Shown here piece by piece: positions 36,259-40,946 of a DNA stretch of 64,000 nt; positions within the stretch are counted from its first letter, which is position 1, and each line of letters begins with the position of its first letter. The position numbers and the translations under genes were made by a program. The notes under the pieces were generated by a model. The model did no database searches and was not told the DNA's origin. It saw only the letters and a list, made by a program, of their open reading frames with translations. The stretch is from Lepidodermella squamata (lineage: Eukaryota; Animalia; Gastrotricha), in the NCBI GenBank assembly GCA_047495785.1, contig JBLDXI010000015.1, positions 2,604,001 through 2,668,000 of the forward strand, read 5' to 3'.

Positions 36259-37197
36259 AAAAAAATTATTAACAACTTGATTTATAGTATAAAAACGTTC
36301 TAGAAACAAATTTCAAATTTAAAAGGAAATTAAATTTTAATAAATTTAAAAATAAAATAAAAATAGACATGTAATAAAATTGAGTGCTGGAAAAGAATAT
36401 ATGGCCTAAATTAGGTAATAAATTCCATTGAGACTTTATTTATGGGGTTTTACGTCAACAGACGGATTTCCGCGCCCAAAAATGGTAATTTTGCGCCTAT
36501 GAAACGGAGGCTGAATGTTACGCATAGTTGCATGTTGCATATTATGGCTGATGAAAACGGCAGCAACGCCGTCAATAATGCCAACATGTTATAACAATAA
36601 TTCTATTACGGCTTTTCAGCCGTGGAAAGCAGAAATAATTTTCACATTATGAATCGAGTGTGGATTTACTGTTTAAATTTTAGTTGACTGATTTTTACGA
36701 CTCGTGCTGTAAAATCATGCGCTAATCGCGTGTCACTTGACTCAGCTGTTGAAGCAGGCCTTTTATTGGAGCAAGAAATATTGAGCTAATAGACAGGTGG
36801 CGATTTCATCAATCTACTGCCAGTTCGATGAGCACACACAGATAAAACCAGCAGTTATCTACTGCCATTGATTATTCTGAAATTGAACCAGATTCGAGTT
36901 ATATTTCGATTTGCTGGAATTTGTATCTGCATTCTGATAATTGACGCAAACTTATTGAATGATTTATTCCTGATTTTCTGGAAAATTTTCAAAATTAAAT
37001 ATTGTTCGAACTTCACAGTGTATAAAACTTGAAGACCGATCGCATATAGGATTTTATTGCGTGGTTGGAAAAATCCGGATCTCGCTTCAAAAATGCAAAC
37101 CACGAAAAATTCTCCAATACTTTTTACCGGTTTTAACCTGTTTCAAGAGCAAGTCTCCTACACAAAAACAGCAAAAATCACAAAAAATCACAGCAAA

Positions 37198-39546
37198 ATG
37201 TTTCCGAATGAGCTAACCGCGGCAATAGAAGGTCATGTTAAATACATCTTCGACAAGTCACAGGCTATAATTATTTTCATCAATAGTTACGAATCGATTT
37301 CCATTCTTTGTTGATGAGGTCTACGCTTTTTTGAGCGAAATAATTGGCATATGGTGGACATCAAGCGTTGCCATGTGAGAAGTAACTTCCCAAGAGACAC
37401 TCGATCGATCAATCAACCGCTTTTTTCAGCAAAAATGAGGCGAATCGATTTGAAACCATTGTTATAGCGATAACCCAAGTGCACAATCATCCTGCTTTTT
37501 TTACCTCCGCAGAATATTTCAAGCTCGATTTTGAAACCTGACTAACAAAATCACAAATTTAAACGCGATGAATTTCAGCTCAAAAACGTATGAATTCGCT
37601 TCGAGTTTGGCGGCTATGTAAGAGTTTAAAATTCCGAGAAAACTCAAATTTTTAAAGCACAATTTTTAGTTATCGACCTCCGCCACTGAACGCCTCATTA
37701 GCTTGGACTCGAGGCGTTGTACCCTATGAGATTGACCACGACTCGTTCCCTCGCGGCATCTATTTCGGAGCCTTGGAAAGCATCATGTGGGCCATGGAAC
37801 AGTTCAATCGCTACACCGTCGTGCAATTCGCACAGAAGACTAACGAATTTGATTTCTTGAACTTCACGTATCACCCACTTCCGACAAGGTCATCGCATGT
37901 CGGCAGGCAAGGCGGGCGGCAGGTCTTGTACCTGACGGGTGACGCGCCGAAAGAGGTCCTCCTCCACGAGTTGATGCATGTCATTGGATTCCAGCATGAT
38001 TCATCGCAAGTGGGACACGGCAAATATGTGTCTAATATCGATATCAAAGATCCGAATAATATTAGGTAAAAATTTATCGGCGAATTGACGAAATTTTCGA
38101 ATATCGCTGCTGAAAAAGTTAATCAAGATTGCACAATCCAATTTAAGCATTTTTCCACCGACTTTTTCGATTTTTGACGATTTTGATGTTTTACTCTCGC
38201 GATCGATAAAGATGCACCCAGTGACCTCAGATTTATTATTTCATTTATCTGGTACCATCAGGCTTGCAGGAAAATTTCAATATTGGCTACCGAGCCTGAT
38301 GATATCGGAAAAATCACTGATTTTAAAAATCGATATTAGGAATCGATATCGAATGTCAAGTATACAGCATGTCCCATAAGTAACTCAAACAAAGGAAATT
38401 CACGGAAAAGGGATCAGGAACTCTTAAAAATGCGGCGAATCTTGAACAAAAATCAAAAAGCCTTAAATAGTTATCAAGCGTGTGTCACTTGTCAGTGGGA
38501 TCCGGAGAAATTCGGTGAAACTGGGTAAAATACCGAAAATACCGAACCAGTTACCATCGGGGTTTTACGGGAATTTCCCGGTAAAATTGCGGACAAAAGA
38601 TGGCAGTTTTAAGCCTGAAGGTCAAAAAAAGTTGAATTTTCTACAAAAATTTTCAAAATTTGAAAATTGTTGCGCCATGGGACACACTGTAACCATTTTT
38701 AATAAATGATAAATTTATTTAGTTAATTTATTAATTTGATAATTAATAATTAATAATCATAAATAATTTGATAATTAAATTTTGTATAGTAATTATTATG
38801 AGATTATTTTATAAGATTTTCAACGATTTTTCGCTCACTTTTTCTTACTTCTTACCTTAATTTTGGGACAAAAATGTTTGCTCTTAGCTCAACTCGCGAA
38901 ATGAACCTAAACTATCATTATAAAAATTCTCTTTTTTTCCAGGTTGAGCGGATGCGTAATTATAGGTTCATTCGATGCCGAATCTGTAATGCACTACCCA
39001 TGCAGTTTTACCAATCCCTACAACAACAGTCAATTATTACGCCGTAACGAAACCAATCGAACACCCAGACTAGCCAGCCTCAGCCAAAGCGATATCGCCG
39101 CTGTGAATCAACTATACGGCGCTAAAAATTCGCCCCCAATTTACACCGACGTATCTTTTATGAGCTGCCGAACATGCTACGGCGACAAGTCGAAAGCAGC
39201 AATTTGTTCGAAATGCGCCGAAACCGAGCATTTCGGTCATCAAATGTCACCCATCGATGATTTCACTGTCATGGCGTGCCGGTGTGGCCGTTACCAGAAT
39301 CGAATGGCGTTATGCACGGCGGTGTTGAGTGACAAAAAGTACGTACGGCAGAGTGTCTACGTGTGCTACGACTGTTTCGACGTCGCCAAGTACCGCAAAG
39401 AGTACAAGGGCTTGTCACCCGGCGTGTGTTACAATTGTGTCACCCGATGTCATAAGGGACATAACATTCAACTACTCGAGCGATGTGCGCCTTTTTATTG
39501 CGATTGTGGCCTGCTAATTTGTCGCATCGCTTGCCAGGCAAAATAA
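37198..39546 (+). CDS. Astacin-like (M12A) metalloprotease fused to two UBR-box zinc fingers; exons 37198-37231, 37287-37374, 37579-37617, 37670-38065, 38943-39546
   Basis: 'WTRGVVPYEI', 'SHVGRQGGRQVL', 'HELMHVIGFQH', Met-turn 'FDAESVMHY', 'LSQSDIAAVNQLY'. Then 'CRTC...ICSKCAETEHFGH...CRCG' and 'CT...YVRQSVYVCYDC...GVCYNCVTRCHKGH...FYCDCG'. The first three exons are hand-inferred from phase-consistent GT-AG sites. Confidence 0.8.
38508..38600 (+). repeat. Representative copy of a dispersed repeat of about 100 bp (other copies about 16324-16422, 18700-18785, 43780-43890; reverse about 40333-40405, 40480-40535)
   Basis: Shared core GGGTAAAATACC(G/A)AA...T(A/G)CC...TTACCATCGGG..TTTT. Confidence 0.7.
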
Positions 39547-39961
39547 CAATTTTCAGGAATAAAATTGACAAGATTATTTAGTGCAATTTTTTTTTATTGC
39601 CACAATAATTAGCTATTAAAATGATTTTCGCAATAATCACGTGTCTGAGACATTGCCTCGATACAGGAAATTAGCCATGTTAATGCTAATTCTTGCATTG
39701 GACCGTATTTATACAAATAAGATGAGTAAACAAACGACATTGTTTTTCGGTGCAAATGCGTCAATTCGAGCAAATTCCAGAGACATTAATATACCTGTGG
39801 GACTCAATCGAAGTGAGAACACAGAAAAATGAAAAATTCCACCTTAAAACAATTTTTTATTAATTATTAATAATTATTATTTGTTTTCATTATTATTGAG
39901 AATAACAAATTTATTTCATTTTATTAATTATTATTGAAATATTATAGATTTTTTGCAAAAA

Positions 39962-40946
39962 ATGGCTTTTAAATCAGTGAGTTTCTTCGTTTTAATGTCC
40001 CTCGTTGCCAAGCAAACGTCGGCTGCAGTGTCAGCAACTTGTTCAGACCCATGCAGCTCTACGATTGGCACGCTGTCGCTTACCAGCTTGGATACATCCG
40101 TCACATGTGCTTCCACGGTTGACAAATCCAAGGTGACAAGTGCACCCGCTGTCAAGTACGCGAGTGCCGTCACAGGATCCCTGTACACCCTCATAATGGT
40201 CGACCCAGACGCGCCTGCGCCTAATTGCCCGACCAGTTTGTACTACAAGCACTGGCTTGTTACCAACATCCCTGGAGCAACTCTGTCTGCAGGGTAATCA
40301 AATTTGCAAAATTAAAAAAAAAATTCTTTAAACTTACCTGAGAAAACCCGAAAAACCCCGGATGGTAAATGGCTTGGCAATTATCGGTATTTTACCCTGA
40401 ATTTATGTTGGTAAAATAATGTTTACTTATCTCCGGAAAGCGATGCTAGCGGTATTTTCCAAATTTCCGAACCTAATTTCCGAAAAACCCGAAAAAGCGG
40501 TAATATCGGTATTTTATACCCAGTTTTACCAAATTTCTGTTGTTTTATTATTATGTCTGAATTGTTGATTTTTTATTAGAACCAGCGATTTGGGAACCTC
40601 AGGTAAAGATTGGACAATCGTCACCGCTTACGAAGCTCCAGCCCCAACTAAAGGCGCTCATCGCTATCAATTTTTCCTAATGAAACAAACCGCTTCGTTG
40701 AGCGTCGCGGCCGATACTACCCGCGATAGTTTCGACCTGGTCGGCTTCGTTAAAACCAACAGTTTAACAACGTTGACGGCTGGCTTTGCGTACAAGGTTG
40801 ACAGTGGAGCGGCTGATAGCTGCACAGCGACTACAACATCCTGCGTCAGTTTATTTTCCGCCGCTAGCAGCCGTTTTTCTGCAGCCAACACTGCGACAAC
40901 AATAGCGGCAGCGTGTTTTTTCGTTGTTTTAGCGCGGCTTATGTAA
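39962..40946 (+). CDS. PEBP/RKIP-family protein with signal peptide and GPI-like tail (exons 39962-40293, 40580-40946)
   Basis: 'YTLIMVDPDAP', 'HWLVTNIPG', 'YEAPAPTKGAHRYQFFL'; hydrophobic N- and C-termini. Confidence 0.88.

Follow-up and report, generated by a model that had tools for sequence, protein, structure and literature searches.

We analysed a 64,000-nucleotide (nt) stretch of the genome of the gastrotrich Lepidodermella squamata (contig JBLDXI010000015.1, positions 2,604,001 to 2,668,000; hereafter the window, in whose coordinates positions are given) and found that it carries, at 37198-39546 on the forward strand, a gene predicted to encode a protein of 373 amino acids in which an astacin (M12A) metalloprotease domain is followed by two tandem UBR-box zinc fingers. 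As read from the sequence, the gene has four exons, all of its introns are GT..AG, and the phases are consistent. Its parts, including an alternative first exon, are the following.

37198-37231, forward strand: candidate first exon of model A (exon 1), encoding MFPNELTAAIE in phase 1, opening with an ATG and ending at the donor AAG/GTCATG
37287-37374, forward strand: candidate second exon of model A (exon 2), with acceptor tcaatag/, donor CAT/GTGAGA and a phase that fits exon 3
37568-37617, forward strand: alternative first exon (model B), encoding MNFSSKTYEFASSLAA, with an ATG, a good donor (TAT/GTAAGA) and a phase compatible with exon 3
37670-38065, forward strand: exon 3, the N-terminal subdomain of the astacin catalytic domain, identified by matches to Pfam Astacin and to astacin and BMP1 in the PDB
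37965-38000, forward strand: within exon 3, the zinc motif and Asp151 (HELMHVIGFQHD), of which HELMHVIGFQH is residues 140-150 (37965-37997)
38943-39546, forward strand: exon 4, comprising the end of the catalytic domain, two UBR boxes and the stop
38943-39129, forward strand: start of exon 4, the C-terminal catalytic subdomain, with SVMHY at 38983-38997 and the ending LYGAKN, colinear with relatives
39130-39312, forward strand: UBR box 1, degenerate (zf-UBR 29.5 bits, profile positions 12-58 only)
39313-39543, forward strand: UBR box 2, complete (zf-UBR 32.2 bits, 11 Cys/His ligands)
39544-39546, forward strand: stop codon TAA, read from the sequence together with a polyadenylation-like AATAAA at 39558-39563, which begins 12 nt past the stop

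An earlier note on this DNA, made from the letters alone, had described the gene as an astacin fused to UBR boxes, and profile searches bear out this fusion. Exon 3 alone matches Pfam Astacin (PF01400) with 48.4 bits (E = 1.2e-12, against a cut-off of 22.5) and retrieves BMP1 and astacin from the PDB (E = 3e-11 to 5e-9), and exon 4 matches zf-UBR (PF02207) over two stretches (E = 2.5e-12), each of which singly exceeds the Pfam cut-off of 25.2 bits. The two exons are separated by an intron of 878 nt (38065/38943), across which intronless homologues align colinearly in tblastn matches, and the spacing from the HE of the zinc motif to MHY is 52 residues here versus 51 in the relative P0009. Because of this colinearity and near-equal spacing, the splice junction that the fusion depends on is supported. 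The intron itself contains an extremely AT-rich stretch at 38700-38830, built of degenerate TAAT/ATAA repeats.

The beginning of the gene is less firmly drawn. Exon 3 lacks an ATG in its reading frame, which is closed by a stop just before the acceptor, so that an upstream exon is required. Model A (exons 1 and 2) contributes 41 residues ahead of exon 3; we looked for homology support for exon 1 and found none, and exon 2, which has no Pfam match, encodes a weakly hydrophobic segment (VYAFLSEIIGIWWTSSVAI) whose Kyte-Doolittle 19-residue maximum of 1.39 is under the usual transmembrane threshold. A candidate homology between exon 2 and a metagenome contig bearing a relative (L004) was rejected because the matching stretch lies upstream of the start codon of the L004 gene, after a stop. 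In model B, the single upstream exon joins exon 3 across a 52-nt intron and produces a short N-terminus, as in most relatives. Both models are unverified candidates, and neither of these putative N-termini contains a signal peptide. The earlier note had begun the protein at MFPNEL... and seen no signal peptide there; the latter observation holds, but the start itself is putative, at least one other model being possible.

We found that the catalytic domain retains its zinc motif and Met-turn and has lost its disulfides, both as the earlier note had read. The zinc ligands of the catalytic site are present together with the catalytic Glu and the Tyr of the Met-turn, the HExxHxxGxxH motif is intact, and the Met-turn SVMHY (residues 187-191) keeps its Ser, Met and Tyr; these features, including the zinc-binding Tyr of SxMHY, are common to classical astacins such as crayfish astacin (1AST), BMP1 (3EDG and 6BSM) and the meprins. 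In contrast to the classical astacins, the predicted protein has no recognisable signal peptide or prodomain, neither of the two disulfides, and an Asp where they have the Glu that secures the N-terminus of the mature enzyme; it thus does not show the combination of signal peptide, propeptide and two disulfides that defines a classical secreted zymogen. Alignment with BMP1 places substitutions at all four canonical disulfide Cys positions, with HTCVTF becoming YTVVQF (Cys to Val), CGC-CS becoming PTRSS, NCDK becoming DAPK, and no Cys following LYG. The Asp (Asp151) stands directly after the third zinc His, where 14 of 16 aligned relatives have Glu, and HDSSQVGHGKYV is found where HEHxRxDRDxYV would be expected, such that both the Glu and the RxDRD typical of the relatives are missing. 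Across the gene model, 45 of 56 family-conserved columns are kept.

The two UBR boxes differ in how much of the fold's chemistry they preserve. The UBR4 box uses 11 Cys/His ligands for three zinc ions, requires Phe1671 and Phe1713 to bind the N-terminal residue, and holds the amino group of that residue with Asp1715 (PMC10687169). Box 2 has the same ligand count, 9 Cys and 2 His (C297, C314, C317, C335, C338, C342, H343, H346, C359, C361, and C366 or C370), and places Tyr306, Tyr358 and Asp360 at the positions of Phe1671, Phe1713 and Asp1715, respectively. Its sequence matches in the PDB include the UBR4 box (8j9q, E = 1.8e-5) and FBXO11 (E = 9e-5). An AlphaFold2 (AF2) model of residues 236-373, which span the tandem UBR module, has a mean predicted local distance difference test score (pLDDT) of 89.5 and a predicted template modelling score (pTM) of 0.83, and each of the 35 structures that Foldseek ranks highest against it in the PDB is a UBR box. 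In VIA-align comparisons, box 2 covers the full length of the UBR4 domain (8j9r, Z = 9.4, 71 of 72 residues aligned, root-mean-square deviation (rmsd) 2.4) and matches FBXO11/UBR6 (7yrb, Z = 9.7). The UBR boxes closest to it are accordingly those of UBR4 (8j9q, 8j9r) and FBXO11/UBR6 (7yrb, 5vmd). The AF2, Foldseek and VIA results together assign box 2 to the UBR-box fold; the fold-search matches did not resolve box 1. The earlier note's assignment of the Cys clusters to UBR boxes, as opposed to disulfide domains, is upheld by Pfam, by the PDB sequence matches and by the similarity of the model to UBR4 and FBXO11 (Z 9.4-9.7).

The same note counted two UBR boxes, which stands in that both match zf-UBR, but box 1 is degenerate, having lost three of its 11 ligands and its pocket Asp. 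Its first Cys is absent, Glu268 occupies a position that is Cys or His in 48 of 50 tandem modules, and Asn292 one that is His in 47 of the 50; CRCG replaces the CDCG found in 38 of them, exchanging the pocket Asp for Arg and leaving Ala and Arg at the last two UBR4-equivalent pocket positions. Each of these changes is unique or nearly so among the 50 tandem modules and the 16 aligned relatives. Judged by the residues kept, box 2 looks like the one competent reader of the pair and box 1 like a remnant. Unlike those of UBR4 and FBXO11, the complete box here is not part of a ubiquitin ligase; it is paired in tandem with a degenerate one and joined to a protease.

Such near-unique substitutions (Glu151 to Asp, loss of RxDRD, loss of box 1 ligands, pocket Asp to Arg) are what would be seen if the gene were a decaying or non-catalytic paralogue, that is, a pseudo-enzyme or young pseudogene whose frame is open by chance or for scaffolding. 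Dead relatives do exist, among them P0015 (HLIMH), which lies beside a live copy, and the gene's own branch in the tree described below is long (1.07). However, the reading frame runs uninterrupted through four exons whose splice sites are canonical, the stop is followed by a polyadenylation signal, and the catalytic zinc ligands, catalytic Glu, Met-turn and all 11 box 2 ligands are retained, and we regard decay as unlikely.

We then asked how widely this architecture occurs by searching exon 4 against 1.84 billion representative proteins with HMMER, which returned 87 relatives at E <= 1e-3 and 37 at E <= 1e-10. About 20 of the relatives consist of an astacin domain with a tandem UBR module and align colinearly across the domain boundary at 30-37% identity. 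They include proteins of Paramecium primaurelia (A0A8S1LT67) and P. pentaurelia (A0A8S1S3U9), automatically annotated as 'Metalloendopeptidase', and a transcript of the sponge Oscarella pearsei (EP00118_P016908); further members are found on eukaryotic metagenome contigs, either adjoining MRG and PTPLA genes or in tandem arrays (L001). A word-index search with the family alignment returned only two family members and ordinary astacins, and an ESM Atlas feature search gave no usable match. In the literature, ZF-UBR (PS51157) is named without comment among astacin accessory domains in the legend to Figure 1 of the 2023 review by Gomis-Ruth and Stocker (PMC9848320), and our literature search for an intracellular or UBR-linked astacin, or for its function, returned only that domain list. 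The architecture is therefore not new, contrary to the earlier note, which knew of no precedent for it: the family is already present in public databases and in the review's list.

The gene shares with this family the colinear succession of catalytic domain, linker, box 1 and box 2, as well as a clade. In the Paramecium and Oscarella proteins, the common order is a short or disordered N-terminus, astacin domain, LYG linker, box 1 and box 2, and a group comprising the Paramecium proteins, P0007, P0009 and P0015 has a DVxKYxK insertion in box 2 in common with the gene. We built a maximum-likelihood tree from catalytic domains only, with 16 UBR-fused astacins and 26 ordinary bacterial and nematode astacins, the latter being whatever a word search returned and not a balanced sample. 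A single branch (support 89/92) separates the UBR-fused domains from the others, and the gene's domain is nested with those of Paramecium, P0007, P0015 and P0016 (support 97/92). This topology suggests that the astacin-UBR fusion arose once. The gene thus adds a new and divergent member to a eukaryotic family that has been catalogued but not studied. It differs from the Paramecium, Oscarella and environmental members, with which its identity is only 30-40%, in its introns, its Asp for Glu, its missing RxDRD and the degeneration of box 1.

Some of the metagenome contigs merit description in their own right. Contig L001 (Logan contig SRR31724247; 2-988, 1383-2468 and 3125-3502) holds at least two tandem intronless astacin-UBR genes, one copy with an intact HEIMH and the next (P0015) dead (HLIMH, SIMRY) and with an MGC start. 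In contigs L004-L006 (ENA metagenome contigs from a microbial eukaryote), gene calling separates the astacin part from the UBR part as neighbouring open reading frames (ORFs; 2227-2844 and 2847-3428 in L004), which probably belong to a single gene interrupted by a short intron or a change of frame. The zinc motif there, HEIMHTLGFLH, is followed by AENNN, not EHxRxDRD.

Astacins of all phyla are described as having a signal peptide and propeptide and as acting outside the cell (PMC9848320). The astacin-UBR relatives all lack a signal peptide, a transmembrane segment and a hydrophobic N-terminus, and no stretch ahead of their catalytic domains attains a Kyte-Doolittle 19-residue score of 1.6. 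Three of them (P0015, P0053 and P0094) and three small tandem-UBR proteins share an MGxxx[ST] start, which fits the N-myristoylation pattern (PROSITE PS00008). P0007 begins with MG and does not fit the pattern, and the gene described here has no such myristoylation-like MG start in either model. In a full-length AF2 model of P0007, disorder extends over the N-terminal 94 residues (pLDDT about 30), and the catalytic domain and UBR boxes are mostly confident; the predicted catalytic domain shares the classical astacin fold, aligning to crayfish astacin over 174 residues with Z = 20.2 and an rmsd of 2.6-2.7.

The company that the tandem-UBR module keeps is also informative. The module is found C-terminal on a PARP (P0040), a protein kinase (Pkinase; P0046), AIG1 GTPases (P0049 and P0052), an NLR with NLRC4_HD2 and leucine-rich repeats (LRR; P0037), a RING protein (P0029) and a B-box protein (P0075), and one protein of 1423 residues (P0001) carries an array of 19 UBR boxes. 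These partners (PARP, kinase, AIG1, NLR, RING and B-box) are all cytosolic. As a side observation, the set resembles innate-immunity proteins, and the module is promiscuous. Taken together, the N-termini without signals, the cytosolic partners of the module and the loss of both disulfides are the reasons for which the family is best read as cytosolic. We consider it likely that the protein encoded by the gene is itself cytosolic, and the earlier note's claim of a non-secreted protein agrees with all of the comparative evidence.

The opposite reading, in which the protein is secreted or luminal and its Cys/His module lies outside the cytosol, would require either a missed signal-peptide exon or use of the exon 2 stretch as a type II anchor. 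A possible source for such an exon lies 700 bp upstream of the gene:

36515-36652, forward strand: ORF of 45 residues with its ATG at 36515 and a signal-peptide-like start (MLRIVACCILWLM / MLRIVACCILWLMKTAA)

This ORF may be a chance occurrence, a small secreted peptide gene or a missed first exon. Secretion would also accord with the behaviour of the classical astacins, all of which are secreted (PMC9848320), and with five N-x-S/T sequons in the astacin domain. However, the donors of the upstream ORF are weak, and the five sequons are not far above the approximately 2-3 that we estimated by hand from typical residue frequencies. The exon 2 segment reaches a score of just 1.39. It has negative charge on its N-terminal flank and positive charge on its C-terminal flank, an arrangement that would, by the positive-inside rule, put the C-terminal domains in the cytosol. 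Together with the relatives without signal peptides, the loss of the four disulfide Cys and the cytosolic partners of the module, these considerations make a secreted or luminal protein very unlikely.

With moderate confidence, we read the gene as a divergent animal member of an old eukaryotic family that combines a non-secreted, disulfide-free astacin with a C-terminal tandem UBR module in which box 2 serves for docking. Under this proposal, an astacin domain without signal peptide, folded prodomain or disulfides most likely stays in the cytosol, where the protease may still cut given that its metal ligands, catalytic Glu and Met-turn Tyr are kept. Box 2 would most likely dock a partner or substrate to the protease, possibly via a free N-terminus, and box 1 would have decayed to a structural remnant. 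Of all this, the architecture, the family membership, the pattern of retained and lost residues and the UBR fold are observed. Catalytic activity and its absence are about evenly balanced in our judgement, and we think it rather doubtful that box 2 reads N-termini.

Several points weigh against this proposal. The predicted first exon or exons are guesses, and the upstream ORF at 36515 could in principle be spliced to the gene, if only via weak donors. The conserved features that the gene has lost (Glu151, now Asp, RxDRD and three box 1 ligands) may reflect relaxed constraint or inactivity. Finally, FBXO11 has the same Asp and aromatic residues in its CDCG region and is not known as an N-degron binder, and for this reason the pocket residues of box 2 are no proof of N-terminus reading.

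A close contender, which we place somewhat short of an even chance, is that the UBR module is a general docking or localisation adaptor that reads no N-termini. The protease would then be a single example among the many enzymatic heads that the module recruits to a common partner or compartment, perhaps within a stress pathway or one resembling innate immunity. The occurrence of the same tandem module on PARP, Pkinase, AIG1, NLR-LRR, RING and B-box proteins and in the 19-box array of P0001 is what such an adaptor would produce, FBXO11 is among the closest solved boxes, and many UBR boxes lack N-degron binding and probably make protein-protein contacts (PMC4506424). Set against this, box 2 retains, as Tyr/Tyr/Asp, the trio of residues on which UBR4 depends to bind N-termini, and of the 50 tandem modules 36 have the pocket Asp and 40 have an aromatic residue in the place of Phe1713. 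The pocket residues of box 2 are compatible with N-degron reading, and general recruitment fits the many partners of the module equally well.

In the version of our proposal in which N-termini guide the protease, a protein would bind to the UBR box through its free N-terminal residue and be clipped by the metalloprotease fused to that box. If this is correct, the bacterial ClpS-ClpAP system offers a functional analogy, in that a reader passes substrates to a protease with no need of ubiquitin. In the bacterial system, the adaptor ClpS is a protein of its own and ClpAP is an unfoldase-protease dependent on adenosine triphosphate (ATP), whereas astacin is an ATP-independent endopeptidase. The two systems have no homology, and the astacin-UBR protein, as one polypeptide, would clip rather than degrade. 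Extended to the whole family, the idea becomes that astacin-UBR proteins carry out ubiquitin-independent, N-terminus-guided proteolysis in the eukaryotic cytosol and that the same reader aims kinases, PARPs, GTPases and NLRs; we offer this as a speculation that is quite unlikely to be true.

The neighbouring genes in the window encode a nicotinic acetylcholine receptor subunit, an EB-module protein and a phosphatidylethanolamine-binding protein (PEBP). The receptor subunit finds its best matches at just 45-50% identity, scattered across many protostome phyla, as expected of an animal from a poorly sampled lineage. The PEBP gene lies directly downstream (39953-40946, forward strand) and has two exons, a signal-peptide-like start and a hydrophobic C-terminus resembling a glycosylphosphatidylinositol-anchor signal.

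Classical astacins carry CUB, EGF, MAM or ShK domains as C-terminal partners (PMC9848320), whereas the gene described here carries a zinc finger of intracellular type. The astacin-UBR family contradicts the standard picture of astacins as secreted zymogens (PMC9848320), and the gene and its approximately 20 relatives, with no secretion signal, no disulfides and a zinc module of cytosolic type, point to an unstudied intracellular branch of the astacins. The gene from L. squamata, with its decayed box, is not the best representative of this family, for which the Paramecium proteins, in which neither box has decayed, or the sponge protein are better suited. The tandem-UBR module provides a tractable handle on the family and beyond it, as one binding assay would inform many architectures.

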